From positions 2,294,001 through 2,358,000 of the forward strand of contig OX337238.1 in assembly GCA_946965045.2 (NCBI GenBank): a DNA stretch of 64,000 nt. The letters run 5' to 3'. The position numbers and the translations under genes are program-made. Position 1 is the stretch's first letter. Each line of letters begins with the position of its first letter. Origin of the DNA: Epithemia pelagica (Eukaryota > Protista > Bacillariophyta). The notes under the pieces are model-generated. The model worked only from the letters and a program-made list of their open reading frames with translations, was not told the origin of the DNA and searched no databases. Below are positions 19,640 through 43,430 of the stretch, in pieces.

Positions 19640-19890
19640 AGACACCATTTCTTTCTATAGCGTGGAATTGGTTGTATTTTTTGTCTGTATCTGGGGCTGT
19701 CTGGAGAGATGATCATTTCATGATTTCATGTGATTGGTGGAAACTAGTGTGGCGTGCCATACGCGCAAATGAATTTTGAGCTACGTTGCTATTGGTGGAA
19801 AATCTTTGGTGTCTTGTATCCTCGGCCTCTCGATTTTGCATCATTTTGGTCAACTATAAGCTCATTGTTTTTGAATGACTCTACTTGAAC

Positions 19891-22800
19891 ATGATGTTCT
19901 CTACACCTCTCGGTCACCAGGTGCCGCCACCTGATGAAGAAGAGCTCTTTTCATATAGATCCTCCTTCACTAGAGGGTTTACTGAGTATCACGAGCTTCT
20001 GCTTAATATCTGTCTGGGCTTTGTCCGCCCACCACCAGTGCAACGTAGACTAAACAAGATTTTGGATAAGAACGATCTTGGTCTTCTCAAAGGAATGGTC
20101 CAGATTGAGTTTTTGTCTGGTTTAGAGAAGAATAGATCGGGGACGGAAGAAGCCTCAGGAAAAGAAGACCCACACCCTTACGACGTCTTCCTCATGGAGA
20201 CGACCCTCTCTCGACAAGACATGGGAGTTGCTGTCTGCATGCCAACCAAAAGTGGTAAAAACCTTTGGTACAATGGCCGAACGGAGATATGGTCCCTAGA
20301 TTCTCCTCCCTTTCCAAAGTGGAGAATTGCTTCGCTTTCCGGGCCGGCACGTATTCTTGCAGCGCTTTCGGAGAATCCCGATGTTCACCCTTTAATGGAA
20401 GCTGCAATGAAGCGCGAGCTCCTCATGGATGCAGAAGAGGATTTGTCATCGCTCGATGAATCGAAAACATGGCACTTGAACGAGTCGCAAAAGGTTGCCG
20501 TTGCTACAGTCACCAGCCCAAGCTTTCAAAGTGGTTTCTTCTGTATCCAAGGACCCCCTGGGTATGTTCTTGATTGATCAATCGTTTGTAGGCGTGTGTT
20601 GCCCTAACTTACTACTTTTTTCAGGACCGGGAAAACATCGACTTTGACTGCGATGATATCAGCGATGAAGGAGCGCTCTCTTGTCCTCGCTCCATCGAAC
20701 GCCGCTGTGGCGAATATAGCGCTCAAGCTTTGGGCACAAGGAGGACTTGAATTGGAGGACATTATTGTTCACGGCTCGAACAGCGATCCTTCGGTTCACT
20801 TTTTGAATCCTCCTGCAAGGGGCATTCAGTACAGCACACTGGTCGAGGCATGGAAAAAAGAGAGAGACGCTTCCAAGCGAGATATCATTCTTCGAGAATT
20901 TGTCGAATGGCTGAAGATAAGGGAAGATCATAACCTCACATTGGCTGAACTTGGTCACATGTGTCCTTTCTTTGAGCTAACGTGTCGCGAAGGCCGTGCG
21001 CAGTACCAACAAGCGATAAATCAAGCAAAGGTACTTCTTTGCACTTTAAACTCTGCAGGATCGAAAACGATTCAGGATAATTTCTCCGCCCACACGATAT
21101 TCTTGGATGAAGCTTGTCAGTGCCCAGAAGCCGAGTTTTACATTGTCACTTCGTTTCCTCGTGTAAAAAGAGTTGTGGTTATGGGGGATCCTCAACAACT
21201 GCCATCTACTGTTCTTGACCGAACCTGCAAAGATTTCAACTATGGGTCTTCGTGGCTCGAGTCCGTCTACAAAACAAACCCCGACAAAATCCATCTTCTT
21301 GATACTCAGTACAGGATGGATCCATTAATTTTGAAGTTCCCGAACATGAAATTCTACGATAATCTTATTCAATGTGGGCGAAATGTATTGTCCAGAAATT
21401 CTCTTCTTTCTAAGCCGTTCGTCTTTGTTGACACAGATTCAGGGGGGCACGAAGAATTAGACAGTTTCTCGTGGAAAAACATCTTTGAAGTGACAGTTGT
21501 GAAGTCGATATTGATGACGGATTCGGACATAACACAGCTTTTGAAAAGTACCCGAGGGAAACGGGTAATTGTAATCACGCCGTACAAAGCTCAAGTTCAG
21601 CTCTTACGGTCAGCGCTGAAGCTTCCGTACCCTGATCACACTCTCGAAGTGAACACGGTGGATTCTTTCCAAGGGCAGGAAGGTGATGTTGTCGTGCTAT
21701 CAACTGTGAGAACACACAAAGTTGGCTTCGTCGACGACCGTCAGCGCCTCAATGTTGCTGTGACTCGAGCAAAAAGTGTTCTCCGAGTTGTAGGCGATGC
21801 GAAGTTCTTCAGTTCTCTGTCCCAATCTTCAACGTTACGCGCGCTTGTGGAGTTTTCCCTCTCTTGCGGAGTCCTGGAAAAGACCAAAGTGCGAACTATA
21901 CCATGGAGCCCTCCCAACTGGAGTTGTGAGACTTTTTTCAAGCCAGTCATGACAGTACGGTTTCTCGAATGTGTAAGTAGATGTCATGCATTTTTCATCT
22001 TGAAAGACAAGAAATAAGAAGACTTAAGTCTATCTTTTTCTTCAGGTTCGGAAATTGTCAAGTGTTTCCCGAAATATTTGCCAAAATACCCTTTTTGCTC
22101 TCGCCAAAGGTGATGAGAAATCTTTACTCTCGCCCATTCCAAAACGCTCCCTTCCTTCATGGTACATTTCATGTTTGCATGACTACTTTGATTTACGGAT
22201 TGTGTGGATTACGAAGCTTATAGACTGCAAACCCTCAATCGAAGCTCACTTCGCTGGAACTTACAAAGATTGTCTACGATTCACTCAGATGAATGCAGGT
22301 ATGATCCCTCCTGACACTTGTATAATGGAACCCAAGCTCGTAGGGGTGAGCCAGTGTGCAGAACAGCTCAGCCATCCTTCGAGTAAGGCAGAATTCACAG
22401 TATCATGGCCCGTGACAAATGTCACACAGAGAATAATGTTTTCTGGGGGGGACGAGCCAATCGGCAGTGTTCAACTTGACACATTTCAGGAACGAGTTGC
22501 TTGTGCATCTCCTCCTCTGATCATAGAGTCAAGGTCTGGAACCGGGAAAACTCTTGTTCTTCTGCAGCATTCGGCATATCATGCTCATATAGCGGACAAA
22601 AGACCTGCTTGCTTCGTAACGGTCTCCAGGCGTCTGCGTAATGAACTGGAATCCCGGTACAAACAAGTAAATCAAGCAGAGAATCTCCAGTTGCCAGACA
22701 CTTTATTCTTCACACTTTCCCAGCTGTTAGAAGATCTCCTGCAAGTAAGAAACATTCATGACTTTGACCAAAAACATCGATGTACGTATCTTGGTTACGT

Positions 22801-25800
22801 GGAAGAGCGCAGGTCTTACAGGAAGATCAAAGTTGAGGCCCATCTTGTGGAGAATGAAATTGGTGGAGTCATCAGTGGTTCATTAGTTGCGGCCACGCAG
22901 CGGAAACCTCTTTCTCGAAAACAGTACATGGAGGATATTAGGAGCAACATTGGGAATGACTTTAAAGAGGAACGCTGGCAAAGAACTCTTGTCTACGATG
23001 AATACGAGGAATATGTCAACTGGAAGCAGCGAAAGGAAATGTACGATTTTGGTGATGTTGTAATGAGGCTATTGCAGGAAGACGTCCCACAGTACTTCTC
23101 ATCAGGTAGGAGAGAATTTCGGTGAATGGCCCGTTTTACGATGCAATAACTCACCAATGAATATCTCGTGATTTTACCAAATTCAGCATACTTGGACGAA
23201 ATTCAGGATCTTTCCTATGCCGCGATTTATCTCATCTGTACATTGGCGGGTAAAGAAAGACTGCGATGGGTCTGTGCTGGCGATCCAGCTCAGATGATAT
23301 CTCCTGGATGTTCGTTCACATTTGACGGATTGAAACAGACTCTTCTTGCTGTGAAACCGGGAATAGAAGACCGCGTCAAACAGGTTACCCATTTGCTAGT
23401 CAATTACCGTACAACCAAGGACGTTCTTCATTTAGCCAATGAGGTGCTTACCGTTGCCCGTAAAAATTTTCGAGGCGCGATTCCATTCGCACGCCGCGAA
23501 GAGGCGAAGAAAGACCTTGGGTTCAAAGTGCTCCTTTGTGATCGGAAAACAGCATTTCAGCAGAAGTTGAAGCTGGGAACAAATCAAGCCGTGGTTTTCT
23601 CGTCCACTAATCCAGCGGATGCAGAAAGGATCATATTGAATTGGATTGGTTCACATCCTTTTGTTGTGTCCTCCTTAGAGTCAAAAGGTCTAGAGTTCGA
23701 CGATGTCATTGTTTTCTTTGACCATGACAGAACAGTATGGAACGTCGCAGGACAATCTGCATCATCGCTCCGGATGCTTCGCGAACTTTATGTTGCCATT
23801 ACCCGAGCCCAACGTCGCGTCGTGATTTTAACGAGCGGGTCCGACTCTGACATGGTCAAGTTCTTCAACAGTCTTGACTGCGAGTTTCAAGTCGAAGGCG
23901 CTGAGTTGGTCCTGAGCGACTTCAACAAGGTGACTACTCCCGAGGAGTGGTTCAAGAAGGCTCAAGAACATTTTTTCAATGAAGTCTACTTATTGGCAGC
24001 ACGTTGCTTTGACATTGCTGGGAAATCGAGCTGGTTTCACTGGAGCCAAGGAAAACATGCCGAAACATCAGGTAATTATTCAACTGCCTGGGAGGAATAT
24101 ATTTTGGCATTGAAAGCGTTTGACGCTGAAAATGACCATGAGAATGTAGTGCATGTCGGTTTGGCTCTCGCACACCCCTCCATCGCCAAACCTTCAGAAT
24201 GGGAAAAATCATACGATACTATCGTTGATGAGGCGTTGAAGTATAGTTCGAAGATGTTGCAGAAGATTGACAGCAGTTCAAAAGTAAGATTGGCTTTACT
24301 TCGAGATGCTTGGGAAAGTATCTCGATTGATCACCTGAAGGATCAGACCCTTGCTAGTCTTTTTATCGTATACCGTGGACAACAGAGCTTGAACGCACTT
24401 GTCGCCAAAGGTGATGACGAAGACAGATTGGTAGTTGCTGAAGCGCTGCCTTCGGTTGTCGGAGATTATCACAAAGAAAAGAAAGAGTTTGCCAAAGCCT
24501 CGTCTCTCTATCTTAAGCTTGGTACTCGTGGCAGGTCTGACGCAATCGAATTCACTAAATTATCAATGCGCGAGAATGAAGAGGGCACGAGACTAGTGGA
24601 GCTTCCTGGCGTCTGCGAGAGTTGGGTTCACAGTACGATTCTTCCTCGGGATGAATACGTCGAGTTGCTTCTCCAGTTGTTCAAAGATCCACTGAATGTC
24701 CCTTCCACATTGGCAAGACGTATGCTCACATTACTTGAGAAAAATCCGATCATTACGGCGGTGGATCATATTTCCGGCGATCGCACCCAACTAAAGAAGT
24801 TTGGTTGTCGTGAATTTTTCAAGGAAATTTCTGATGCGCTAGAAGATACATACCAGAAAGGTCGTCTTGAAGCGGCGAGATGGTTCATGGACCAAAATGA
24901 AGAAGAACTCGGGTGGCAGTTCTTACATGAATGTCGTTCAAAATTGACCGATGACGAAATGTGTGTTGCTGTTCAGATGTCACGGCCCTGTCGAACATGG
25001 TTGCTTCAGGAGACAAAACAGCGCCATATCTTTCCACTTGTTTGCTTGCGAACGCTCGCTTCACAAGACTTGCCGGAAAGCGGAAAAGACACGTTCCTCG
25101 CGGTATTGTCAGAATTTGCAATTGATTTTGAGTGCTCGCTTGTGGCTCTTGTTGCTTGGTGCTTTGAAAACTATTCAGGAAGCAATGGCTCTAGGAAAGG
25201 AAAAGGTGGACGAAAGACTAAGCGTGGTCTTCATGAAAAAACGTTGGCTCCAGCGAAGATCGTTGAACCTCTTTCCATATTCTCAAGAAAGCTACTTGCA
25301 GTGTGGCCAAGGATAGCTCATTCGACAGCCGCAGAAGGTCACGCGTTCTCGGGACCAGAGATGAAAGCGTTGCTTTTCTTCGTCTACAAACGTCTCAACA
25401 TACAAGAACGAACAAAATTTGACAAGATCACGTCTAAGGACAACGACATTCGGAAAGCCTGTGAAGTGTTTGTTGAACTATGGCTAGGTACCTCGGCAGC
25501 AGATCGAGATCGATCAGTTTGTCTCTCCGCTTCCGTAACAACTTCTTTCCTGAACTCAAAAGGACTTGACAGTGTTCAGCTGTTTTCTCTTTTCCAAGCT
25601 TGGTGCTTGGGAACCAATTGCTTTGAAGATTCCTTACCTGGTGCAGCGATTCTTCCAACTGTGAAGCTCGCACTTCAAGTGGATGATGACATTCGTGCAT
25701 TTGAAATAACTCGTAGAGCACTGTCTCGCAAAAACATGACAACGAAACAACATGGTGCTGTTTTATCATTTCTTTCTTCGAATCCCTCAAACATCTCGTC

Positions 25801-26692
25801 AGCTGTCCACAAAGGTTTTTCAGATGTCGCCTTGATGTGCACCAAGTCTAGCCTTAAGGAGTGTGCCAGCACGCCAGGTGAAGCCGGCGAAGTTTTGATG
25901 ACATGGCTGGAGCGGTGCAAGAAAATTGTCACCATCAAGAACGAAGTAGATCTGTTCTCGTTCCTGGTTCTTCTGGCAGATGAAGTAGAAGTGCGACAAG
26001 ATCATATGGCAAGTATTGTGCTGCGTTGTTTTGGTCCCCACGTCTACCGCTTTACCAAGATGTATTTCAGGACGACGTCGTCATCGTCAAGTTCTCGCTC
26101 CAGCGATACGCCGTTCATGGCGGAGATAGTAAAATCGCATAGAGCGCTGTTGGACCATGTTGTGAGCAAGCATACGATTCTCCATAACTTGCACCAAAAC
26201 AACGAACCAACGGGAAAGCAACCCCACAAAGAACGGAATCAAGGTAAATCCAAGGGTGACAAGAAGAAGGGATCAAAAAAGGTACAAGGTGACCAAAAGC
26301 AGCCATACCAGAGTAGTGGCATGGAACAAAAGAACGTACCGCCATCTTCTTACCAACAGGACGACTTTGCGCAACGGTTGAGAGGTTGGGCGCAAGACGA
26401 ACCCATCAATCCTGGGTCTTCTGTGGCTACAACGGGTATCCCAGGATTAAAGTCCCTGGCTGATTTGCAAGCCCTGATACCACATGAGGCCAAGGAAGAA
26501 TACAGGAGGGCTTCCCGTGGTGCCTCGGACGAATCTGTCCAAGAACAAGAAGATGACGAGGAGGAGGGAAATTCCGGAAACAATATTGACAAGGACACGC
26601 AAAATCCGACGCACAACAAGAATAATAATAATAACAAAAAGAACAGGAAGAAATGCAAAAGAGGTCGGAACAATAACAAGAAGAAGCGTTGA
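19891..26692 (+). CDS. Tandem SF1 helicase protein: DNA2/NAM7 (Upf1-like) helicase plus UvrD-like (TRANK1-type) helicase plus helical C-terminus, 4 exons (19891-20561, 20625-21972, 22046-23105, 23187-26692), about 2,190 aa
   Basis: Helicase 1: QGPPG|TGKT, APSNAAV, LDEACQ, GDPQQLP, LDTQYRM, TVDSFQGQE, RLNVAVTRAK. Helicase 2: ESRSGTGKT, YLDEIQD, AGDPAQ, LVNYRTT, SKGLEFDDV, LYVAITRAQ. Three canonical introns restore frame. An additional upstream exon cannot be excluded. Confidence 0.88.
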
Positions 26693-27894: not shown

Positions 27895-28745
27895 GATGAT
27901 TGAAGCAAACAACAAAAATGCCTCCAATGCAAAGACAACAACGATGCCCAACGAGGAAGGAAGAGGGTTTGATAGAATCTGTTGATGTGAGGTGAACGAA
28001 AGGAACTGGTGACTGGTGACACCGAAAACGATTCCGCGATCTTTTCTGGAAGCTTTGAAATTGAAACTCCTCCTCGTTACAGGGAAAACCAAGACATGCA
28101 CAGCATAGCCACAATAATGAGTGGTCCGAAAAGTTGTATGGTAGGAATGCGCACTTTCTGCATCCGAGCGCGCGAGAATCTTTCAGAGTTTCATATAGTC
28201 GCGGGTAGAACGCATATAATAAGGCATGCCAATCGGGAGCTATCGCTATCGGGACCCCGCTACTCTCTTGAAAAAGAAAAGGAGTAGCTAGGTGTAACAT
28301 GGCCTAGCTCTTCGGAGGAAGGGACAAGAGACAGTCTACAATAGACCCGTATCAAGAGTCGAACATGAAATAGATAGAAAACACAGGAATGTGACCATCG
28401 CATCGATTATACCATCTCTCGGTGGTTTGACGCTCCGAACCTAGGACGAGGTCATTACATATTGAGTAATTCAAGATCGATATGAACAGGGGGAAGGAGA
28501 AGGAGGGGTTCGTTCCAACCGAGTTTTGCTCAACCATCGAGTTGGTCTACGGTCCGAACCATGTTTACTCCCTGACGAACCTATCCTGTCTACATAGGAT
28601 GACCAGCGGGGAAAATCATATCTACCAACTGAACCATCCAGTATAAGATGACGATGTTTGTTATTCTTTATTTGATTCATGCATGAAAACTGAACAGTAG
28701 GACGTGTTCAGTGTCCGATTCCAGTACCCAATGCCCTATCAGCCA

Positions 28746-31700
28746 TCAGGAACAATAGGATGCGGCGAGATATTCAATGGAGAGACGATCCGCCACAGCT
28801 TCGGATATGCGCTTCGCCACTTCGGCTTGGAGCACTGTGGCCACCTCCTCCCCACTAGCAATCTGCCCAAAGATATCGGAAAGCTGAGCAGTTGTGGCAC
28901 TTGTGTACACCTTACCGCGAGGAGATGCGTTGGCAATTGCTTGGAGTTGCGACGTGGACGCCCCACCCCGAAAAGCAATGACGTGAAGCTCAAGGTCATT
29001 CCCATCATAGGTTGACTTCACGGATTGGTTGGTACTTGAGAATGTTGAGGCTGCTTGTGTCGCATCCCCAGCACATCCATCACTCATAAACACAACGACC
29101 GGGACGTGCGTTGACGGGGTCGCCAGAACCAGCTCCTTGGCAGATAGGGCGGCAGGGTAGAAACACGTGCCACCTCCTCTATAGTCAAGTGTGGTGCACA
29201 CGGTGTTAAGTTCCTTCATTCTAACAGTCGTCCGGGTGCCACCCTGAAATTGGACTACAGAAACAAGATCAGTCGAGCATTGAGTTTGATTTCTCTTGTT
29301 CAGGTATTCGTTGTACGCTGTAACGACACCAGACCAATGATTCGACATGGAACCGGACTCATCAAGGACAAACACCATGTGTTTACCATAGCCGTCAGTC
29401 AAGGTACTTCGGTTGCGATGTGTCTTTGGATCCACCAAAGGGATTGGAATCACATCTCGCTGCCCCGTATTATCAGGGTGACTGATTAAATTTTCAGACA
29501 ACTTGGACTCTGTGGTTTTCGTAGCCTTTGGATCAAAAGAACAAAGGCATAAATCAATATCCTTGGCTATCAAACTGCCAACAACATCTTTTACCTTGAG
29601 ACCAGACGGATGAAGTAGACTGTAACTATCAGCGTTCGGCGCACCGACAAAGGCAGGTGGTACCATTCCATGAGCTGGTGCATCTGTCAGAAGAACCATG
29701 AATTTGACTTCCGATGTCCAGTCCGTGGCTGATTCCCATTTTGAAGCCCGCAAGATTGCTCCCAAATGATCTTCGGCAATGTCACCTCCACCAGACGGAC
29801 TTGAGAGTGTCTTATCAATGGCTTGAAATATCATTGCTGGATCATGTATAAAGTGTTCTCCTCCCCAGCGATTCTCCATATACTGGTTATTCCCATCGTC
29901 CACATCTCTGTAGCCCATCACAGCATATCTGATTACGAAAGAAATGCCGGGAAACTGAGCTTTGAGCTTTTCACTTATAGATTTGTTTCCTGAAATGACG
30001 GCCTTCAGTGTATTTCGAGCTGGTGCTGTATACTGAGCCATGCTTCCGGTCTGATCCACAACGAAGCCAATATCGATTGTGATTTCTGATGGCATGTTCG
30101 CTTTCTTGAATGATCTATGAAGATCACAGAGGAGCGCTCCGCTCAGTTCAGAATCACCATCTAGAAGAGCATCGAAGTATTTATGGGTCTCGGTGTCGAT
30201 ACTTGTGGCTGCCGACAAATGTTTTTCGACCAAGCGACAACGTTGCTCACAGCGCCTTCGTCGAGCTTCCTCAAGAAATGAGTAAATGTCTTCTTTCGGC
30301 ACGTTGGAAGCTGCACCTTCACGGATGCCGAACTCTTTCGAGAGATCTGATTCCAACAAGATAAGTTCGTACGAGCCCTTTTTACCCTGGCGCGCTGTTC
30401 GGCCCTGGATTTGAATCTCTTCGCTAACTTCGTCCGAGAAGAATGTTTGGAGGACCAACACTCCTCCTGCTTGTTGAACTCTGTCGTCCTTGCAAAAGAA
30501 ATCTGTACCACGCCCAAACACAGCCGTACAAAGGGTCACCTGGCCGGATGTGGCAGCTCTGCTTATGGCATGTTCTTTCTCGGATGCTGTCATGTCCTCC
30601 TTCAGAGGCGATACGGTCACGTTCAATGAATTCAATTTTCCGTAGAATGGACTGTCTATGTATTCATCCATTCTTTGCTTGGAATGAAAGAAAACAATCA
30701 CAGCTCTCTTTCTCTTTCTTTCATCTTGTATGCGTTCTGTTATGCTATGGAAGTAGTCACTTCTTCCCTTGTCAATTCGTATTCCATTACCTGCCTTGTC
30801 AAAAGAGAAATTGGACTTCCCATACACACTGGGAACAAACAAAAATTTTTGTAGACCATACTTAGCCAATACGTCTTTCTCGTACTCTCCCGTGGCATCG
30901 AGAGTACCTGAGACACCCAGTACACGAGAGGGCGAAATATTCGCATACGAAAACCGACCACATGAAACTTGCATCGCCAAATGTTTCGCGACATCTTTAT
31001 CTGTCAGATTTCCCTTATCAGCTTCTTTCAAATAGGCAAAGACTGTGCGATACCCATAAACGGCTTCGAAGCTGACGCTGTCCATCACTTTGTATCCAAT
31101 ACGTCCCGACTGCTTGTCGACGTAGTAAGGTTCCTCGTCAACCAGCGAGACTTCATTCAACATTGATGTCACCTCACTTTCTAGTATGTACTCGAAATTT
31201 GGAAAAACCTTTGTGAGTGCAGAGTATGCTTGAGAGACTTTGATTTCATCAAGGCGCAATCGACGCCCTCCAGTCTTGTGGGCACTCCAAATTTGTCGTA
31301 GAATGGTCTCCACTGCGTCATCTTGTATCTGTACTACTTGGTTATAAGTTTGTCCGTAAAACTCTGAGCCGAAGAAAACGTCCACTTCATCTACCAGAAG
31401 AATTTCTGCCTCTGTGGCATCTGTAACTTTCGACTTTGTTTCCACATTACTGAGCATCCGATGAAGTGATTCCGACGTTACACATTGAGAGACTGATCCA
31501 GTGGGAATGCTGGACAAAGAATTTCCTGCACTTTTTTGATGACAACTTTCCGGGTTAGACAACGTATCATTCGAAGGATGGTCTTCATGATCCAATGACG
31601 GGGGACCAAGTTCCGAATTATTGCTCGCATTCGTCTGGTGACGAACGGGAATGCTTTCGTTAAGGGCAGTATGTGTTTGACGACCAGAAGAAGGAACAAG

Positions 31701-34700
31701 ATATCCAACAGCCTCTCGACTCGTCTTCTCAGCTTGCGTTGTGTTCAATTCACCGCGAAACAACTTTTCGGAGAGAACACGGATGTTTCCCTTCCTCGCC
31801 GTTGAATCCTCAGATAAGGTGGTGATCTTACTGTACGTGACCAGATTCTCGAGATGGAAGGCCTCAAAAATTTGACTAAAAAGGTTGTAGTCCCTCGTCG
31901 ACAAGTATTCACTGTAGCATACGCATCGCACACGGAAGCCGAACAAACTGAGGAGAACTGCTGCAGCGCCCAGGATAATCGACTTTCCCTCACCAGTGCG
32001 GATTTGCATAAGTTGACTCTCCAACGAGTCGGCCTGTAAGGACGCACAACCAAACATGCAGAGAAGAGTCAATACTTGAATGTTGTGAGGTTTCATTAGC
32101 ATTTTGTCACCAATATCGTTTTTGCTTCCGGAAGCCTCTACACGATTGTAACTTTCACCCGATTTGAGAATCGTGAAAACTGCAAAAATTCCCGCAAGGA
32201 CGAGTGGGATCTGCTTTTTTGTCGCCTCGGCCCACCCTCTACTGCAAGAGCAAGGCTTTATCGAGTAGGCTGCCTTGGTCACCCTGTCCACAAGGACTCC
32301 CAAGTCAGATTCTGGGGGTAAAAATGAACCCAACAACGATCGGTACTCTGCTTCAAAGATCCAGTAGCTCTTAAGCAATAGGTCAGTGTCTATTTGAGCT
32401 TTGGTCTCGCTCCCATTGGGACGATACACACCATATATCTCCTTCACCGTCTCTTCGACTGGTTTTTGGGTTGTTTCCTCATTCCAAACCATCGTCAAAA
32501 CCTCTTTAAATTGGCGAAATTCAGTCAGAATGGTCTGGGCAACGACATTGTCTTCTTCGGAAAACCCTTCATCACTTCGTCGAAGTCCCAAACCTAGATC
32601 GAAAAGATAACTGTAGCCCCAATCGTACTTAAGACACGACTCCAAGACTTCGCTCATCATGATTTTTGTAAACTCCCGGAAAGGTGCAAGCTCGACTAGC
32701 ACTTTGCCCATCTCAATGAAACACCGACGGAAATCTTGCATCCTGCTGATTGCAGTTGACTGGTCGGAGATGTAGCTTTTAGTCTTCTGACGTAGGGATT
32801 CGATTTCTTGCTCAACCATATTTAAGATGGACTTATACCAAGATGTCGCAAAAAAGTCAGGATGTCCTTTCAGTTTGCTCTCCATTGACTTCAGGTCTGC
32901 AATATTGCCATTGAGTAACTGATACTTGCGGTCCGCCCAGTTTGAGTCAATGTCCTTCTTTATCCTTTCCACTTCTCCTCTTACCATGTCCATTATATCA
33001 GAACAAGTCCGAGCTGAGTCCAAAGGAGGAGACACGAGATCGTTGAGAAGGTCGAGTTCATCCAGATGTACAAGAACGGTCTCAACTTGACTGTATTTCC
33101 GGTCGGCCAAAAGAGCTTTTACTTTCTGTCTCATCTCCCAAGGTATATTTCTGATGTTGCTATCAAGTGACTGGCTTTCTGATTTCGAATCACGCGCCAA
33201 CGCGAGAAGCTTCTCCTTGGCATCTTTAACTTGCAGAAACCTTTTACCACTATCACTTCCTTCATCAGGGTTTTGTTTGTCAGGATGGGTATCTTTTGCC
33301 TGAAGGCGGTAAGCCTTTTCAATGTCTTGTTTTGTTGACGAAGGAGGCAACCCCAATATAGCGTAGAGGTTGATATTTGCGAAGTCACGACCAAGGTAAA
33401 AATGTTCTTGACATATTTGAAATGTTTTGCTCAGCCATTGATCTTCTCCAAGTACTCCAGATTTAACTTCTTGATGAAATAAGGTCCCAAAGTCCGCAAT
33501 ATAACCACCAAAATGTCTTAGCTTCTGTAGCCGTTCCCTGAAAAGGCGTAAGTCAAAAGTTTCTTTCCATTCACTGAGCTTGTCAAGGTCATTTTGTAGT
33601 GTCTCGAACACCAGCTGGTTTGTAAATTTGAACTCCCGCCCATTATCTCTTGTTAACACAATACACGGAAAAGCACATACAAGTTTCCGGTACACCTCAT
33701 AGATCCGCTGGAATTCTCGGCGACGCGACTCACACAGCAGCACTTCTTTTATGTCCGAGCACAAATCACGGAACAAACTAAAAGCTTGGTCCTTAAGTTG
33801 GTTGCATCCCTCGCGCACCGATGGTATATAGTGCGAAAGGTGGCGCTCCATCATTTCAAGTGACTTGATAGTCTGACCAACGGCATAGAAGCTACGACCT
33901 TGCATCGCTGCGGTTCCAGATGAAACCTTTTGCATCACCTTCCCGTTGACCTTTCTTCTAAAATCATCGAACGAGACACCGCTAAAAACACTTCTCAGCG
34001 CACCTCTCCATGTTTTTGGGTCAAGGCCTTCCAAACGTTTCTTCCAAGAAACGACCATAGGTTCACTTAAATTCTCTTGGAAATAACTCTGCTCCGCCGT
34101 TTTTCGGGCGCTTTCCCAAGTTTCACGGAGACCTCCTATGTCTGACAGTACGTCTCGAGACGTTATGTGGCCTCTGAGGCCCATTTCGAGGGCATTGTCC
34201 AAGACTTCCAACAACCCGAGGGCATCATCATAACAGCAATTCTGCGAGACAAATTCCTTGAGACTTGTCAGTGCTTCTTGAAGCGTGTTGACAAGTGTGA
34301 TTTGTGTATCGTGGTATACAACAACAAGTTCAGGTATCTCCGGGGACTTCTGTTCAGTGGCAGACTTCAGCGAATTAAGATGACTGACCAGTTTCTTGTT
34401 CTCGAACCAGCTCTTTGCGAATGCTTTCACATCAGCTTCACACCTATTGACGGTCTGGTCAAAGTTCCGTTTTGCTTGACTTACTGCTTTAGTCGTTGCA
34501 GTAGTAAAGGAACTCTTTAAATGTCTTTCGAATGTATTTGCATACATTCGATTTGTCCCAAGCGCAACGAAATCGAACGAGTTCGAAGCTCGCTTAATCT
34601 TTTGCACGAAGTCCATTGTGAATTTGTTAACGTCTTCTTCAATTTTCTTCAACGTCTCGAAAACTCGAAAGTCTTCGTCCACTGAAACTAGGATCTTGCC

Positions 34701-37700
34701 CAATTCTTCCTTTGCTTCTCGAAGAATCTTCAGGTTTTCTAAGATTTGCTGCAATGGCTCGTCGGATGGATGAATGAATTGAAGCAGGCGTTCAGTATTG
34801 TCTGCAATAATAGAGAGGGTTGACGCGATTTGAGAGAGACTCGTCTGGAACTTTTGCTTTTTGATTTGATCCCTCGTCGAAGCCAAGGGAATGAGAAACT
34901 CGCGAAGACCCTTGAAGTTCTTTTTTGCAATGTGTTCCTCTACCAAGGAGTCCACTGTTGTTTGTTTTTGCCCCATGAGCTTCCGAAGCGATGCAATCCT
35001 TGCTGATCCCTCACTTGAAGTATACTCATCAATAATTTTTGCCTGTTCTAGATTTTCAAGTTGTCCTTCGACCAGCTCCCAGTCCGTAGTCTCGAGTATT
35101 GATGCTTCGATCTCATCAGAGTGGGCTCTCACCCCAGTACGAGCTTGCTCTTTTAGCACTTCGAAATCAAGGGATAGGGTGTCGGCGAGATGTTTGCTTT
35201 CATGGGAGATAATGTCCAGTGCTGACAAATATTTTGCTTTCTCTGCGTATGCATAATCTGAGTTAATTACAGCCGTTGCAACCTTGGAAAAGTCGTTTAA
35301 AGCCGCTGTAGCGACCGATGAAACCACGTGGCAATCAAGGTTCAGTTCCTGAAGCAACTGATTTTCACAAAGGAAGTTCCCAATTTCTTTCGAGAAGAAG
35401 CCGACATCATCGTCCCCTTCGTCGATTGCAGAAAGCAATTTTGATTAAGAGTTTTGGGTTCGGTCTCCAAGGCCCTGAATGTATATTTGCAACTTTGCCC
35501 TTGTTTCAGTTTCCGCTGATCTAAGAGCTTGATCAGTCAGCACTTCAGCAAGATATGACAGTTCTTGCTGTTCACGCACAATCAACTTGAGAGCACGAAT
35601 GTGATCAAGTGGTTCTCCTGTTTGTGTGGTCAAATTCTCAATATGAACCGTAGCCATATCCATTACAGTCTTGCTCCTTGTCTTGTAGTCAACCTCAAAC
35701 GCAACACAACAATTCGCAACGAATCGATCCCCTGACGCGAGAAACTTATCAAAGAACATATACGATTTGAATAACATCAATTCACCACGGTCACCGCGCC
35801 CATCCTTGACTCCGTTATCCCGTGCCATCTTTGTTAAAACTGATATTTCTCTGGACTTGCTCTTCAAAAATTCCTTGTAAAAATCGATCACAGAGATGTA
35901 GGGAGCCAACACTTCGTTCCATACATATTGTGCCAGATCTGAAAAAGCTGTGTACGTTTCGAGCAAAAAGTCCAGTGACTCGCTCACAAGATTGACATTG
36001 GAAACATCTACCTTGCGTGCTTGGGCACATGCATCATGCATGAAATCAGCTGCCACCGCTTGAAGTTGGCGGCACACTGACGAACTCTTCTCTTGGAAGG
36101 AAGGAAAGTCGTTCAGCTCCACTAAGAGAGAATTGATCGCTTCCACACGTCTGGCCTGAGACGCTAGATGGAGCACGTCGTGTTCACGTTTTCTAACAGA
36201 GATACCCGGGCTTAATGATACTTGTGCATATGCATCAAGTGCTCCCATAATAATTGATTTGGCTTTGGCAGAGGCTCTCAAAACTTCAGAAACATCAATG
36301 AACTGTTCCAACTGCTCCGAGAACACAACGACAGGCTCAATAAAATGGAGAGCAAAAAGTATCTCGCGGATCCACTCGTCAGGAGCCTCTTCCAGCTGGG
36401 ATATTTCGTCAAAACCGTCAACAACAGCAGTGGCCGAAGAGATCAACTTGGAAACGTGCTCTACACAGCTCTGGTAATACTCTTTTAGTTCCGGAAATTC
36501 ATCCGACCACAAACACAGCTTACTGAGACGGCGATGAATGTTTACCATAGACTCATTCGACTCCACTTTGACTTTCTCGCAATATTGGGCTAGCCGTGTG
36601 ACCATTTCCTCATGAATCCGTCCCATATCCACTTCCTCTGGGAACTCACCCTGAACCTCATTCAAGTAGCGCATACAACGATGGATCGTGGACGTATTGG
36701 CTCTTCCGAATATATGCTCATCGGAGATGCCAAGTTCCAGTTGCTCATGAAAGACCTTCCGATTATCAGAAATGAACCCACAGAAAAGGTTGTACACATT
36801 CGAGGCCACAACGTGAACATCATTCACGGGAATGCTAATGTCCAACTCTCTGAATGTATGGAGAAGCTCACGGGCACGATCTAAATCGGGTGATTCTGAT
36901 TCCAGTATCGAGCGGACATCTTGATACAGCTTGTTGAGTTCACCCGATAACTTGAGTTGGCTTGTAGCTGTCAAGCCACAATGGCTTCTCAGATGATCAC
37001 CAGGTACAGCCTTCAGGCGCTTTATGTGCGTCTTGAGGACATCGGCATCTGACACCATTGGATGAAAGACATCAACGAGTGGGTATCCTTTCTTGAGGCT
37101 CTTCTGCATAAAGTTCAAGACTTGCCATAAATCAGCATCCCTTGTTCCCTCCATTGTCCACATGATTTCTTGGCGCACGGCTTCTCGGGCAGCACTGAGC
37201 GAGTCCTTGGGTTGGATTTTGGAACTCTCGTTCGTGTGCGTAAAAAGGAACATGAAGGCAAATTTGGACGCTTCAAAGTCGCTCACGAATGTACGGACAA
37301 GCTTGAGGATTCCCTTGACGGCCGTTCCACGATCTTCAAGAAGGGAAACATAGTTTATCATAATCACAAAACGGAGGCTACCAGCGATCTTCGCAACTTC
37401 GCTAAGCATCACCGAAGTTGCAATGTCAATCTCATGACCTTCGGTATCTTGAAACCCTGGTGTGTCCAAAAATACAAGCTCCTTCTTTTTCACAGTAAGA
37501 CTGTAGAAGTGGATATACTTGGTTTCGGAAACCTTGTCGTGGCCAATATCGAATCCCTTCAGAGGGTTCTCTGCTTCAAATACTGTCTTGTCCAACACTT
37601 CTCCTGAGGAACTGGTAGTCTGATGACTGGTCGTGTACATCCGTTTTCCTGCGATACATTGGACTACGGTTGATTTTCCGCTTCCAGTCTTGCCTACGAC

Positions 37701-38075
37701 AAGAACCACGTCTTTGCCCTTGAGATGCTTTAGAGCTTCCGAGCCGTTGGAAATGCTTGAACGAAGCAACTGCATGTTAAACGAATGAGCCAATTCGAAA
37801 CGATCCGACTCCTCGGAAGCATCCTTGTCGGAAGCAAAGTCAAAGGCGTCTTGGCTAAGTTCACTATCACTACCATCATGCGACTCGGTTGTCGCATCAG
37901 TTCCGTCTTGCATTACCGCATCCACAATAGTCGTCCTCTCCTCCTCCCTTTCCACAATGCAGAGGTTCTTCGACTTTGATCCTGACGTTCCCGAAATAAT
38001 CACCATGTCGTTGCTTACCAGATGGTTTAAATCCAATGCTTCTAAAGCATCAATCTCCATGTCATCCTCACTCAT
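28746..38075 (-). CDS. Giant multidomain protein (3,110 codons): AIG1/GIMAP-like GTPase, helical region, DnaJ domain, SecA-like ATPase/helicase and two vWA domains. One in-frame TAA at 35445-35447 (possible pseudogene or sequencing error).
   Basis: GTPase GKTGSGKS, DTPG, FTHT. J-domain LYAILGL...AYRLQAKDTHPDK. SecA-like QIRTGEGKS, SEYLSTRD, VDEVD, FGRGTDF, QIQGRTARQG. vWA VVDQTGSM...GGGDIAED...LLTDAP and VLDESGSM...GGT...FMSDG. The two ORFs are in the same frame: ACC CAA AAC TCT TAA TCA AAA TTG. Confidence 0.8.
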
Positions 38076-40030
38076 GGCAAAACTGATTGGCTTGGATAAA
38101 ACTGCGGGTTGACAAAAGAGACAAAGCAAAAGAAATGGGACTTTGGATCTTCGATCTGTGCTGCTTTTCACAGGAAAAGCTCAACTTGTTTCACCAGAAA
38201 GCCACTGTCAGAAATCTTTTTCTCGTTCTGCAGAGGAGACCTGTTACCCAACAGTCGTTTCCGAGATCATTTGTGACGGGGTTCCGAATCGATAAATACG
38301 TGGCGAGAGGCTGGCGTTTTCTAGATTTCAAGTTTGGCGCGATGGACTATACTTCTCGTACGATGGACAGACTACAATACAATACGGGGACGACGGAGGG
38401 TATTGCATCCCTCGGTATCAGTGTCCACTGCTTAGCTGTTTTTTGTCTGTGCCATCATTTTAGGTTCCCAGGTGGACACAGACATCATTTTTTGCTTTCG
38501 AGACAAATAGAAATGATCAAATGGCAAATTGGCACGCATACCCAGCTGGAGTTTTCACAGTTTGAAACAGACGCATGCCCAGCAAGCGGCCGTGCGTGGA
38601 TAACTGTTGGTTGCTCCATAATTCATAATGACAAGCACACAATTCTTTTCTTTTGTTGCCGAAGCACATCGTACCAATGGCATTCCAGGTGAGTGTGATC
38701 CGTTGCCAATTGCCGTGACAATTACATAGATCATGCTCACTGATCACTGACACTTGTCACTTTTGTTTGCTCTGCTCATGGGAAGAGAGGCGATCATCTG
38801 TTGTGTCTCTGGGTAGCTCATTACGTGCCATTCTACATGTCGAAATGACGGATTTTTGATAACTTTCATTCGATTCATAAACAGACTGCAGACATTGTTT
38901 TCTTTATATACTAGGAGTAGAAATAGAACTCAAGTGCTATTCATTCGTAGAGTTCAGTGCATTCTGAATTCGTTGCAGATCTCTTTTCTGTTTTGAGCAT
39001 GGCAATGACTCTCAGTTTCACCATGAACACAAGCAGCTCTCACACGCTACAGCTACAACTTTTGACTCTATGAACTGATAGACATGGAAAGTAGGGTGTG
39101 GCAAGAGCAAGAGGGCTTCCCATCTATTTGAAGCAAAAACAACAAAGTGTTCGGTCATTGAGAAATGAGATGATGCTACGACCTATGACAATAATGAATC
39201 ATCTATCCTACAGAAGACATGAAAGCAACCAACCAACAATCAAACAACAAAACAATTACTCCTACATCAACAAATGAGACGGGTAAGATACTCCAGTTGA
39301 CATCAAGCGGCTTGTTCCTAGTCTACTCGTTCAACAAGAGACAAGCCAAAGGATCATGCATGAACAAGAGGAAAGATTGCAGCAGTGATGAGTGAGAAGA
39401 AAGAAAAAGAAACAAGAAGATTAGAAATAAGCCACAGCAGTGAGAAGTGAGAAGCAGTTCAGGTTCAGCCCAGCATGTTGCATCCATTGTTCTCACCTCA
39501 CGTCATGGTCAAGCATTTGGCTCGGTTTTTGGTGTTTTGTGACAGACGAGGACGGGAGGGTTGCCCAAAAAATTTGAATCGTGGTGACCAGAGGACAACC
39601 ACCAACCGTCAACTGTCACATGCACGCTGGCCTTGCTCCAACCCTGAGGAATTTTATTGGGTAGACAGACAGACGAAAAACATAAAATGCTGGCTGTGTC
39701 CACTTGGGAACCTGTGAAGGTGGCACAGACAAAAAACAGCTAAGCAGTGGACACTGATACCGAGGGATATATCCTTATGATGACAGACGTATCCTTATCC
39801 TTAACGCACCCTCTAAAACTCTCAATAAGACCAAAGAAAGATATTCCTCTGGTTTAGCATGAAGGAACAGTTGCAAAAAGGGCTTCTTTAAATCAGTCCA
39901 GATAACGGGAAGGGTTCCTGCAGTGCTCTATCTAGTCGACAAAATGTCAGATGTTTCGCTAGAATGTTGGTTTGCTTCCCCTGACTGAAAGAAAACAGGA
40001 CACCCGTAAAAATTTTGTTCTTGCCACTAC

Positions 40031-41878
40031 TCAAAGCCGTTGGACCTGCATGACATGTGATCCCACATAGATTTGTCCTGGTATCATGCAAATTGCTTCG
40101 CCCCCTTTGGGTACTTCTGTTTTGCGCGTGAGTCCCTTTCGGCCCACGTGGACCGACTCGCCACCCGGATTCAAGTCCTTCACTACCACATGTAGAACCC
40201 GTTCGCGTTGGATTTTGGGAGTAATTCGGCAACTGCTGCTTCCCGGTATTTCAATCCAAGTATTTGTTTCAAGGACCTCAGCCGATGGTTTCTTGCCAAC
40301 ATAGAGTGCTTCATCCACAGCCATTTTATAGTCCACGACACCACTCTTCCCAGGAGATTGAATGACGAATTTCAAACCAAGCTCTTTGCTAGTCTTTGGA
40401 ATGTTGACATTTTGATTTTCCGTATCTCCATTCGCGTCACTTTCAGGAGATCCAGGAAAAACTTCAACCACCTCCATTGGTGACGTTGGCCGAGGACGGG
40501 TCAATCGTTGTCGTTTCATGGGAGGATCTGATCCACCGTTTCCGCTTTGACCGTGGTCCTTTTTGGATTGGTTACTACTCTTTTTGGTAGCAACGGGCGT
40601 CGATTTGGTACTGGAATTTCGTGTCACTCGACCGGACCGCGTGGCACGCGTTTGGGGAGGTGAAACCACAAGTACCTCGTTATCGTCGTTCTCCTCATCA
40701 TCATTATCCTGCTTTGAAGCTGTAGCAGCGGATGCCGTCCGGCGTGTGGGTTTTGCGGTTCGTGTGGGTTTCTTGCCCTTTGCCTTTGTATTTGGGACAG
40801 ACAAGGAACGGAGCTTTTTCTTGAGATCGTCATAGTCGGGCTCTGTATTAAAATTGTACGACCATACGAGTTCCAGACAGTGAAAGAGAATGCGGGCCGC
40901 ATCAAGGGGCATGCGACAATAAAACTCGGACGTGAGGTCCTTGACTTGTTTGAGCTTAATGTTGTAAAGTTCGTCATCTGACTGCGCTTGACTCCATGGA
41001 AGGTAGGAGGGAATGCTTGTTTTTTCATAGGTTTGCTTTTTGCCATCGGCAATGGATCGAACCCGAATCAAAATCTCGCCCAGAACGTACAAGACCATTT
41101 CCACGTCATCACGACGGCTACTATTGTGAAGAGTATGCATGTGCAAGCTGGCATACATCGCGGTTCCATGCAGCTCTCCAATTTCTTCAGGTCGTTTGAA
41201 CGCGTGCATCAAACCAAAGTCCACCATTCGTAGTTGCTCCACCGACATGACATCATTTTTACCCCTCGTTTTCGATGACGCCGAAGCAAACATAAAGTTT
41301 TCTGGCTTGACGTCAATGACCAGCTGATTTACGTTGTGGATCGCTTGTACCAGGTCCACCATTCGTTCGGCCAGAGGACCAATGGGAATCAATGACAGAT
41401 CACAGTTGACCGCCATTTCTTCCACTCGACTGACCATATCACTTTCCATTCGTTCCATTATCAAAAAGAGAAAACCTATATCGTGCAAAATAAAGTAACG
41501 AATGAGTTTCACTTGGCTGAAGTGCGGCATTCATGTTTCGTTCAAAGACGTACCAGCAGATTCTCGGACTTTTCGGGCGGGCAGAGGAATGTCAGGCACA
41601 ATGGTACCTCGAAGAGGTTGAAGATGTGCAACGTACAACTGACCCTCATTTCGAAGACTTATTTCATTAACTTTAGCTTCCATCTGGGTTTTGGAGCGAG
41701 GATTGGTGGGTTTCACCGTCAGTTTGACGGCCCATTGGGTTTCCTTTTGGGTTTTGCCATCGACCACGACATGGACGCTTCCCTGGGCTCCCTCGCCTAA
41801 CTTTCGGCCCACTTTCCAGCCATTGGGGAGATCAATGTCACTAAGCTTGCCACTACCGGAGCTCTTACGAAGCGGCAT
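40031..41878 (-). CDS. CK1-group (VRK-like) Ser/Thr kinase with low-complexity linker and possible FHA-like C-terminal domain, 2 exons (41878-41554, 41475-40031)
   Basis: GRKLGEGAQGSV, WAVK, VIDVKPENFM, VDFGL, GTAMYASL, SRRDDVE. A GTACGT...TATAG intron in phase 1 gives SAG|FLFLIME. Confidence 0.85.
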
Positions 41879-42093
41879 GATGTACACCCACAGAAGAAGA
41901 CACCTTGCGCTGGATTGGAAAGGTTTTTGAATGAGATTTACGAAAAACTGAAAAGTAGAGAGAAAAAATGGCGACAAACGCAAGGCGGGCCATCTTTCGG
42001 TAACGGAAACACGGCAAATTTTGAAATTTAAAATCATGCTTCTTTTTTGAATTGCATCCAATCTCGCAACCACATACTTGAACCGTATTGACC

Positions 42094-43430
42094 ATGGTGA
42101 GTGATGCAACCGGTCCGTGTCTGTTCTCGCTGAGCTAGGCCAACGAAAATATTCGTATCTCTGAAGTGGAGAACCATCATGAAAGATGGAGCATGCGGAA
42201 AGAGATATTTGGGTTGAATGTTGCCCTCCTACTCGTTTTTGATGTCTCATTCATTCCCTTTCTTTGCCACCGTTGCTTTGATTCAAACGTGCAGAGACCG
42301 TACTTGCTTCAGGGACACGAACGTCCCATTACATCCATCAAATTCAACTACGATGGAGATCTGTTGTTCACTGCCTCCAAAGACCACGTCCCTTCCGTGT
42401 GGCGGGCCGACAATGGTGAACGACTAGGTACCTTCAATGGACACAAGGGGACCATTTGGGATTTCTCCTGTGATCGATTCACCAAACGGTTCTTGACCGC
42501 TTCCGCGGACGCCACTTGTCGTCTATGGGAGGTTGAGACTGGCGAATGCACCAAAATCTTTCCTCACATTGGCCCCGTCCGTGGAGTGGCGTGGGCCGAG
42601 GGTGGACAAATGTTTGCGACAATCTCCGATCCCTTTATGGAACACAATGCCAAAATTAGAATCTACAACATTCCGGAAGATGCGGTAGACGACCCTGCGA
42701 AATATTCGGATGAACCAGAGGTGGAAATTGACTTGTCGAAAATGGGTGGGAAACGCGTCAATCCTACCAATGTACACTGGACGGCCTTGAACGATGATCT
42801 CTTGGTCTCCTTTGATAATGGACTAATTCGTTTGTATGATCCTTCGGATGGAAGTATAAAGGAGGAAATCCAGGCACACGAGAAAAAGATCAACCGCGTT
42901 CGGTTTAATGGCGACAAGACCTTGTTCATTACAGCGTCGGCCGATTTTACCAGCAAGTTGTACGATCCAGTAGATCTCAAACATTTGAAAACGTACCGCA
43001 CCGATCGTCCCGTCAACGATGCGGTGATTTCTGATACCAAAGAGCATATTTTGTTGGGAGGAGGTCAAGAAGCCATGAGTGTAACGACGACGGCCGGAAA
43101 GGTTGGAAAATTCGAAACTCGCTTCTTTCACATGGTGTACGAAGAAGAATTTGGGATTGTGAAAGGACACTTTGGTCCCATCAACGCATGTACGTCCCCT
43201 CTGTGCTGGTGTTCTTGTAGATTTTGTTTCTTTCTCACATTGTTGCTTTGTATTTAATAACAGTGGCTATCAATCCAACAGGGAGAAGTTATGCCAGTGG
43301 GGCAGAAGATGGATACGTGCGGTTGCACATATTTGACAAGGACTATTTGGAGATGAAAGATCCAGTACCCGAAGAAGAAGAAGATGACGACGACGATTAT
43401 GTCGATGGAGAGGGGGAGCCAACGCGCTAA
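42094..43430 (+). CDS. eIF3i: Eukaryotic translation initiation factor 3 subunit I (WD40), exons 42094-42096, 42295-43189, 43264-43430
   Basis: M|RPYLLQGHERPITSIKFNYDGDLLF, GGGQEAMSVTTT, VKGHFGPINA|LAINP, SGAEDGYVRLH. Donors are GTGAGT and GTACGT. Confidence 0.95.

Follow-up and report, generated by a model that had tools for sequence, protein, structure and literature searches.

What kind of machine is encoded by a single diatom gene that joins a GTPase, a J domain, a SecA-type motor and two von Willebrand factor A (vWA) domains in one frame, and is the copy found here still able to make it? The gene lies in a stretch of 64,000 nucleotides of Epithemia pelagica (GenBank assembly GCA_946965045.2, contig OX337238.1, positions 2,294,001 to 2,358,000 of the forward strand), which is called the window in the following, and is referred to as the giant gene. 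It is nuclear and intronless, and its product belongs to a large, uncharacterised family of eukaryotic cytosolic proteins about 3,100 residues long, which is built from known parts and in which no characterised member was found. The most interesting result is a hyperdivergent pair of putative haplotypes in which the divergence is confined to the giant gene. As judged from sequence comparison, the two copies descend from very old lineages that share one syntenic locus; both have long been under purifying selection, and both are now disabled.

An in-frame stop codon in the window copy

The frame of the giant gene and its only break are located as follows, with all coordinates given as positions in the window.

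28746 to 38075, minus strand: whole frame of the giant gene, 3,110 codons including an internal TAA and the terminal TGA, no intron
35445 to 35447, minus strand: in-frame TAA at codon 877, the sole break in the frame

The frame starts with an ATG at 38075 and ends with a TGA at 28748-28746, and the TAA divides it into an N piece of 876 codons and a C piece of 2,232 codons. An earlier note on this DNA had described one intronless reading frame of about 3,110 codons; the extent and the lack of an intron were confirmed, but the frame is not uninterrupted. The nearest full-length homologue, P0002 of Epithemia clementina (3,185 aa), is colinear with the giant gene, with identities of 54% across 2,273 alignment columns and 43% across 866. 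In this alignment, the N piece stops at residue 918 and the C piece begins at residue 920 of P0002, and therefore the TAA stands for exactly one codon.

Three technical or genetic explanations of the stop were rejected. All in-frame GT/GC-AG intervals were enumerated as potential introns, none of which has a credible donor, and every candidate interval over the TAA would remove sequence that is colinear with P0002. An assembly error is ruled out by contigs from three public runs (two samples, depth 65-117x), which cross the TAA with zero differing letters, indels or joints; a fourth run is thin, and the TAA lies outside its listed pieces. An altered genetic code was also dismissed: the other apparent in-frame stops nearby (at 41533 in a kinase gene and at 23123 and 23147 in a helicase gene) resemble gene borders or introns, and the giant gene itself closes with TGA.

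In an alignment with 15 full-length homologues, the TAA falls in a variable, mostly hydrophobic column within the helical arm of the protein, and two codons past it the window copy has Leu, where 14 of the 15 homologues have Trp. Elsewhere, of the 331 columns in which the other 15 sequences all agree, the window copy differs at 4, which is the second-lowest number among the 16. In the family tree, it groups with Epithemia genes with 100% support, and its branch does not exceed those of these paralogues in length. The TAA is genuine and, because the sequence is otherwise free of decay, looks recent. Since it ends the frame after 876 residues, the window copy is unable to make the full protein. 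It represents either a null or a truncated allele, which was most likely disabled recently.

It is very unlikely that the gene works in spite of the TAA, be it by read-through, RNA editing, a hidden intact allele, or the synthesis of two products (a GTPase-arm protein of 876 aa and a J-motor-vWA protein). Such a reading would be in line with the lack of any other lesion in 9.3 kb and with the excellent preservation of the invariant sites, and Logan contigs drop minor variants, so that a second allele is possible. However, the first Met is found about 157 codons past the TAA, and reinitiation after an ORF (open reading frame) of 876 codons is improbable in eukaryotes. In addition, the TAA is invariant in the three runs, the homologues are made as one polypeptide, and the sister contig described below holds a different, badly broken copy and no intact twin.

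A hyperdivergent second copy of the locus

A second copy of the locus is found in the same assembly as the window on the sister contig ctg1338l (ENA ERZ21939226, 880571-902871), where the genes follow in the same order: GCD14, WD40/eIF3I, kinase, giant gene, an ORF of 265 aa and a superfamily 1 (SF1) helicase made of three ORFs. The two contigs differ in one block.

28400 to 39950: hyperdivergent block between the window and ctg1338l, gene 60-76% identical, flanks 97-100% identical

The promoter region barely aligns, with many gaps and about 57-59% identity, and toward the 3′ end of the gene the identity recovers through 81, 88 and 93%. Between the contigs, the kinase shows 97% identity, and as the helicase proteins that adjoin the giant gene are 98.4-99.6% identical, the hyperdivergence is confined to the giant gene. 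Because the flanks are 97-100% identical, ctg1338l probably represents the other haplotype and not a recent large duplication, with the allelism deduced from one assembly.

Over 2,604 aligned codons, the two giant genes share 66% amino-acid identity, with a saturated synonymous divergence (dS) of about 1.5 and a ratio of nonsynonymous to synonymous divergence (dN/dS) of about 0.15. This ratio ranges from 0.05-0.14 in the motor and the first vWA domain to 0.2-0.25 in the helical arms and 0.4-0.9 in the acidic tail, while dS is 0.5 in the second vWA domain and 1.1-2.6 elsewhere. The copies are each other's closest relatives in four regional trees (support 96-99). In the tree of the G domain, the path between them amounts to about 80% of the path to P0050, the sole Epithemia gene with the helicase next to it. 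In a protein database that holds other gene calls of the same assembly, no relative of at least 90% identity was seen for either copy, and both form single-member clusters.

The copy on ctg1338l carries at least five lesions, among which are an exchange of the P-loop Lys for Ile, the loss of about 385 arm residues together with a change of frame, one in-frame TAG, one in-frame TAA, and a frameshift in the second vWA domain. The syntenic orthologue of Epithemia clementina (JBGMNV010000411.1, 10001-19555 of the extracted stretch) is annotated as two genes of 2,560 and 612 aa; it is really one frame of 3,185 codons with a single in-frame TAG in the second nucleotide-binding domain (NBD2) of the motor. 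Premature stops are present in all three syntenic copies examined. The adjoining helicase is 58-66% identical between the window locus and Epithemia clementina. Two other genes, P0002 and P0003, were considered as Epithemia haplotypes of the locus and were rejected, as their flanks lack the neighbouring genes.

As for the origin of the haplotypes, the two copies may well be pseudo-alleles, generated by reciprocal loss of tandem paralogues or by ectopic replacement with a paralogue, and this explanation is considered a serious one that stays somewhat below an even chance. Tandem pairs are common in the family, with a cluster on the contig ctg1311l of the same assembly, and the divergence fades gradually at the 3′ end, where dS drops in the second vWA domain, as at a recombination edge. 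On the other hand, no relative of at least 90% identity was seen in the protein database, hence no extant donor, and the regional trees place the copies closest to each other. The alternative origin is an old balanced polymorphism of two allelic lineages. Lineages of saturated dS in flanks of 97-100% identity, combined with recurrent nulls in the syntenic copies, form a pattern that is otherwise typical of immune and recognition genes.

N-terminal region, G domain and helical arm

The protein that the frame would encode is divided into the following parts, listed from the N- to the C-terminus.

37731 to 38075, minus strand: acidic N-terminal region, poorly conserved, 28 D/E against 7 K/R in 115 residues
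36996 to 37730, minus strand: TRAFAC-class GTPase domain, with G1 GKTGSGKS, G3 DTPG and FTHT at the G4 position
35448 to 36995, minus strand: helical arm part A, an all-helical bundle, fast-evolving, 22% mean identity to homologues
33375 to 35444, minus strand: helical arm part B, 26% mean identity to homologues
33195 to 33374, minus strand: J domain with intact HPD, Pfam DnaJ E 2.2e-11, 44.1 bits against a cut-off of 27.8
32205 to 33194, minus strand: conserved linker from J domain to motor, 43% mean identity
30300 to 32204, minus strand: SecA-type DEAD motor (NBD1 and NBD2), with TGEGKS, YSEYLSxRD, DEVD, SGT, GRGTDF and QIQGRTARQG
30090 to 30299, minus strand: long helix after NBD2, at the position of the SecA scaffold helix (model helices 638-682 and 686-701)
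29430 to 30089, minus strand: vWA domain 1, metal ion-dependent adhesion site (MIDAS) DQTGSM ... LLTDAPAHG
28845 to 29393, minus strand: vWA domain 2, MIDAS DESGSM ... FMSDG, specific to the diatom subfamily

The motifs quoted in the earlier note are all present in the order GTPase, J, SecA-type and vWA. An AlphaFold model of the N-terminal 809 residues, built with the family alignment (predicted local distance difference test, pLDDT, 88), consists of a disordered acidic tail, the G domain and an uninterrupted helical bundle. The acidic region has a pLDDT below 50 and a mean identity of 28% to homologues, and no signal or transit peptide was found in the giant protein. The helical arm comprises about 1,200 residues in total, and its part B matches no Pfam domain.

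The assignment of the G domain to a GTPase family is less clear. Pfam gives weak matches that are confined to the P-loop (Dynamin_N, MMR_HSR1), and AIG1 reaches 20.4 bits, under its cut-off of 27 bits, and is matched by 7 of 51 homologues. Structural comparison with VIA yields Z 12-13.4 to GIMAP2/4/7, Toc34, Era and EngB, with GIMAP2/7/4 and Toc34 at Z 12.5-13.4 and with equal scores for Era and EngB. The proposed AIG1/GIMAP type thus holds in so far as GIMAP2/4/7 and Toc34 are among the best folds, but owing to the sub-cut-off AIG1 score and the tie of Era, EngB and GIMAP at Z 13, it is a best guess only; a GIMAP/Toc-like G domain is a reasonable guess. The P-loop and DxxG are invariant in the 51 homologues. 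The G4 motif [NT]KxD was not found: the strand before it ends in FTHTNE, and since the family consensus FTHTxE replaces the NKxD of G4, the guanine specificity is putative only. An FTH at this position is presumably a feature of the Toc/AIG1 group.

J domain, SecA-type motor and vWA domains

In the C piece, the motifs follow each other as HPD at residue 720, TGEGKS at 1150, DEVD at 1352, GRGTDF at 1644, QIQGRTARQG at 1678, DQTGSM at 1797 and DESGSM at 2028. Five Pfam models, DnaJ, SecA_DEAD, Helicase_C, P-loop_SecA and VWA, exceed their gathering scores, which is the profile support that the earlier domain assignments called for. SecA_DEAD reaches 39.4 bits (cut-off 24.6, E 5e-10), P-loop_SecA 27.6 (cut-off 27), and VWA, on the second vWA domain, 44.5 bits (E 2.5e-11 to 3.5e-10); the DnaJ models of NCBIfam likewise match the J domain. 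The first vWA domain stays at 22 bits in Pfam, below the cut-off of 27, and is identified by its vWA fold in the AlphaFold model. The second matches the vWA structure 4fx5 in VIA (Z 22.3) and resembles integrin I domains, and the tandem pair resembles the tandem-vWA protein PTMP1 in a Foldseek search.

The AlphaFold model of the C-terminal 1,153 residues, which was also built with the family alignment (pLDDT 82), contains NBD1, an insert, NBD2, a helix of 45 residues followed by a short one, the two vWA domains and a terminal helix. Two inserts interrupt the motor. One is a disordered, Ser/Thr-rich stretch of 108 residues between Walker A and Walker B (31416-31739), and the other, of about 130 residues (1366-1499 of the C piece), is folded and directly follows DEVD, which is the position of the preprotein cross-linking domain (PPXD) in SecA. 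Walker A, DExD, motifs III, V and VI, the MIDAS of the first vWA domain and the P-loop/DxxG of the G domain are invariant across 51-55 homologues of 25-66% identity; within the MIDAS, the invariance applies to D, G, S and M of DxTGSM in 55 homologues.

SecA is the translocase of bacteria and plastids that works at the SecY channel. When a profile of 55 family members was compared with the PDB, the top 24 matches were SecA and SecA2 (E 1.5e-16), and the first DEAD-box helicase followed at 3e-4. In the fold search against the PDB, SecA and SecA2 again filled the top 24 ranks. SecA came first in Foldseek (7.5e-17) and in VIA, with Z 32.5 over about 500 residues, where residues 1-709 of the model align to residues 63-745 of B. 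subtilis SecA. The isolated SecA motor scores Z 29 with 332 residues, and eIF4A, the best of the DEAD-box helicases, scores Z 24.8 with about 315. NCBIfam matched SecA/SecA2 and DnaJ models only. As SecA and SecA2 lead in the profile, Foldseek, VIA and NCBIfam results, the motor is specifically SecA-type. It shares with SecA and SecA2 the two-lobed DEAD architecture and the motifs TGEGK[ST], [DE]YL[AS]xRD, DEVD, GRGTD and QxxGRxxRQG. Like SecA, it also has an insert where the PPXD would lie and a long helix behind NBD2.

The differences from SecA are equally marked. Neither the window protein nor any precomputed Pfam listing of the family members contains a match to SecA_PP_bind (PF01043), and around the insert at the PPXD position about 90 extra residues align to full SecA at a high root-mean-square deviation. 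The SecA_SW profile, which covers scaffold/wing and two-helix finger, gave no match either, and the model has only a long and a short helix before the first vWA domain; the motor lacks a wing domain, a two-helix finger and a C-terminal tail, as well as the N-terminal membrane-binding region. Unlike SecA, the giant protein is cytosolic, eukaryotic and without a link to SecY, is fused to the GTPase, J and vWA domains, and carries the disordered insert between Walker A and Walker B. No transmembrane segment was found in it; two hydrophobic stretches are helices inside NBD1. The view that the protein is not a plastid or canonical SecA was thereby upheld, with a best SecA score of 57 bits against an equivalog cut-off of 862 and with no match to PPXD or wing, no signal peptide and no membrane segment.

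With these peptide-handling domains undetected, the motor might have kept the RNA- or DNA-directed action of SF2/DEAD-box proteins and serve in a nucleic-acid sensor or helicase of the RIG-I-like kind, whose other parts would signal or recruit. After SecA, the closest structures are those of DEAD-box and RIG-I-like helicases (Z 22-25), and a double SF1 helicase gene adjoins. Nevertheless, this role is improbable, because the sequence and fold signals are specific for SecA and not for RNA helicases, and because the insert lies exactly at the PPXD position and is accompanied by a scaffold-like helix. The motif after Walker A, YSEYLSxRD as identified by eye in the translation and the family consensus, likewise argues against it, since it is close to the DYLAxRD of SecA and unlike the PTRELA of DEAD-box proteins.

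Motors of the SecA type apart from canonical SecA are known from bacteria, where "secondary SecA_DEAD domain proteins" have been described (PMC4452313). Giant proteins of Omnitrophota and Actinobacteria carry SecA-like modules that lack scaffold and wing (bioRxiv 10.1101/2023.11.21.568195), and such modules are also found in giant actinobacterial toxins (PMC8195603). With these bacterial modules, the giant protein has in common a SecA-type motor without scaffold and wing, which occurs alone or in a very large multidomain protein. The bacterial proteins differ in that they have transmembrane regions or secretion genes as neighbours, and export or self-export has been proposed for them. Membrane anchoring or self-export of this kind was rejected for the giant protein, which has no transmembrane segment.

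The wider family

A word-indexed search found 115 relatives, about 45 of which have 3,000-3,600 residues with identical order and spacing of the motifs. An exhaustive profile search gave 1,516 representatives of clusters at 50% identity with E 1e-30 or better. Among the 150 best representatives, most match the profile via the motor and the first vWA domain only, and these two are therefore the core of the family. The layout is fixed, with an acidic tail, the GTPase, the helical arm, the J domain, the linker, the SecA-type motor and one or two vWA domains. Mean identity is highest in the motor lobes (57-65%) and lower in the G domain (50%), the vWA domains (45-54%), the J domain (40%) and the arms (22-26%). 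Relatives in AlphaFold DB bear automatic names only, such as "SecA family profile domain-containing protein".

Diatom members come from Epithemia (six of the word-search matches), Thalassiosira, Skeletonema, Cyclotella, Seminavis, Cylindrotheca, Pseudo-nitzschia, Nitzschia, Amphora and Attheya. Outside the diatoms, members are found in the green alga Cymbomonas, whose protein has an additional N-terminal protein kinase, in the alga Chrysophaeum, in the dinoflagellates Polarella and Symbiodinium, and in the bdelloid rotifer Adineta. Database entries of about 2,000 residues were considered as a natural split of the architecture, an idea that was abandoned as a prokaryotic gene caller had broken them at introns. 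A subfamily of about 2,600 aa (P0056-P0068) combines a GTPase, a J domain and the motor. The majority of its sequences stop about 25 residues past motif V, without motif VI or vWA, and may be either a truncated architecture or an artefact of gene models at introns.

The family is also multi-copy within genomes, with at least four loci in the assembly of the window. On ctg1311l (ENA ERZ21939226, 594887-625695), three paralogues without a J domain lie side by side, one of 3,115 aa, one of 3,602 aa (P0034) and a broken one that is split into 983, 132 and 2,008 aa. Tandem pairs on the same contig are common elsewhere, as in Pseudo-nitzschia (P0036/P0037), in a metagenome-assembled genome (MAG) of Bacillariaceae and in Cylindrotheca closterium.

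A viral origin was rejected, as a pattern scan of IMG/VR gave no relative, and so was a prokaryotic source, for which a pattern scan of prokaryotic genomes gave two weak matches to NBD2 only, with 26-29% identity. These two matches belong to MAGs of Rickettsiaceae and Coxiellaceae, which are obligate or facultative intracellular bacteria.

In line with the earlier statement that this architecture lacks a functional characterisation, no description or functional study of the GTPase-arm-J-SecA-like-vWA arrangement was found in the literature. The family is a sizeable blind spot, because it comprises about 1,500 clusters at 50% identity, yet no functional study was found. It represents a type of SecA motor that is used in the eukaryotic cytosol without the parts for docking to a channel and that is fused to MIDAS domains, a J domain and a GTPase.

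Proposed role

The function suggested for the intact protein is that of a nucleotide-gated remodelling or extraction machine for biological conflict, that is, for cell-autonomous defence or self/non-self recognition, a proposal that is held tentatively, with a likelihood slightly short of even. In such a machine, the MIDAS sites of the vWA domains would latch onto a target protein, and the SecA-type motor, which is always fused to the first vWA domain via the scaffold-like helix, would grip and pull the polypeptide with ATP. The J domain might recruit Hsp70 to hold or unfold the released material, and the GTPase with its long variable arm could govern assembly or the choice of the target. The capture by vWA, threading through the motor and transfer to Hsp70 that the earlier note envisaged are hypothetical in the same way. 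By analogy, the combination of a translocation-type motor with a J protein recalls the Hsp70-assisted pulling at translocons.

Several known systems share parts of this design. The pairing of a motor that uses nucleoside triphosphates with a MIDAS docking domain is also seen in midasin/Rea1, the MoxR-vWA pairs (RavA-ViaA, CbbQ-CbbO), VWA8 and the BchI/BchD subunits of Mg-chelatase. In contrast to these AAA+ rings, the motor of the giant protein is a monomeric one of the SF2/SecA type, and the two kinds are unrelated in sequence beyond the vWA fold. The immunity-associated large GTPases (GIMAP/AIG1, Toc33/34, GBP and IRG) likewise combine a TRAFAC G domain with a helical extension behind it, in genes that are multi-copy and turn over fast; the giant protein differs from them by an arm of about 1,200 residues and by a G domain that is only the first part of a larger machine. 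Old lineages in near-identical flanks, frequent nulls and clusters are also features of immune and allorecognition loci such as plant NLR genes, MHC and fungal het loci, to which the giant gene has no homology and from which it also differs in that no positive selection was detected and that allelism was deduced from a single assembly.

The conflict-like reading is based on the clusters of multiple copies, the frequent broken copies, the turnover of domains, the fast arms and the hyperdivergent haplotypes, and the immunity-like character that was proposed earlier gains indirect support from the copy number, the broken copies, the arms and the haplotypes. This evolutionary pattern fits conflict or recognition better than housekeeping, without proving it.

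A number of points weigh against such a role. Pairwise dN/dS is below 1 everywhere, even in the arms, so that positive selection was not found, in a test that has low power because dS is saturated. Long-term purifying selection and conservation across diatoms are compatible with housekeeping, and the hyperdivergent pair could consist of pseudo-alleles and not of balanced alleles. The J domain is absent from whole clades and is thus dispensable in several of them. The action of the motor on protein is putative, because PPXD, wing and two-helix finger were undetected by profile. Searches with the defence models of PADLOC gave only P-loop noise, and no experiment on any member of the family was found. 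Finally, no record states whether the four sequencing runs are of RNA or DNA, and none of them could be recognised as RNA.

In place of a defence function, the protein might be a housekeeping factor of proteostasis or assembly, acting in midasin-like extraction or in Hsp70-dependent disaggregation, with the window copy as a redundant paralogue that is being lost. The strong purifying selection on the motor and the first vWA domain, the invariant catalytic residues and the retention of the architecture in pennate and centric diatoms are all in keeping with this, and the pairing of MIDAS and ATPase recalls the midasin and MoxR-vWA remodellers. Even so, only a small chance is given to it, since it is rare for housekeeping genes to occur in multiple copies or clusters, to become pseudogenes again and again or to vary in their domains, and also rare for them to have alleles with a dS of about 1.5 in flanks of 99% identity; the patchy distribution of the family among eukaryotes also speaks against it.

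A role in conflict is the tentative choice. In its most far-reaching version, which is regarded as unlikely, balancing selection would have kept the two allelic lineages separate through about 80% of the period that has passed since the split from Epithemia. The protein would then be a new eukaryotic machine of immunity or allorecognition, in which the MIDAS sites capture a foreign or non-self protein, the SecA-type motor and Hsp70 pull it apart, and a GIMAP-like GTPase with a hypervariable arm is in control. If the giant gene does belong to a defence system, it would provide a testable gene family for the biology of diatoms and their pathogens and a new motor-adaptor design for research on protein remodelling.

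Upstream element and neighbouring genes

The region upstream of the giant gene contains a repeat element, which explains the extra length of the window relative to ctg1338l and is apparently absent there.

38407 to 39768: element of 1.36 kb resembling a miniature inverted-repeat transposable element (MITE), with terminal inverted repeats of 92 nt that are 89% complementary, 330 bp upstream of the ATG

K-mers of the inverted repeat reach a depth of about 40,000, several hundred times the local read depth (65-117 in the gene), and the element is probably a high-copy MITE-like transposon. A tRNA was considered as the source of this spike in depth and discarded, as none was found; the spike is the inverted repeat of the element.

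On the minus strand, within 40031-42250, a kinase-like ORF of 499 aa with a weak Pkinase match is directly preceded in the same frame by an ORF of 239 aa that ends in TGA. They may be parts of a single broken gene or two genes that lie side by side. In the comparison with ctg1338l, the upstream part of 239 aa is 72-82% identical, against the 97% of the kinase.

On the other side of the giant gene, the SF1 helicase (19885-26692) consists of three ORFs, with matches to AAA_11/AAA_12, UvrD-helicase and UvrD_C, and is kept as a neighbour in Epithemia. Farther away, the region 10000-19640 has a strong purine skew (AT skew 0.21-0.27, GC skew 0.15-0.20) and contains long coiled-coil ORFs of 568, 1,656 and 684 aa, the ORF of 1,656 aa having a short match to the integrase core rve_3.

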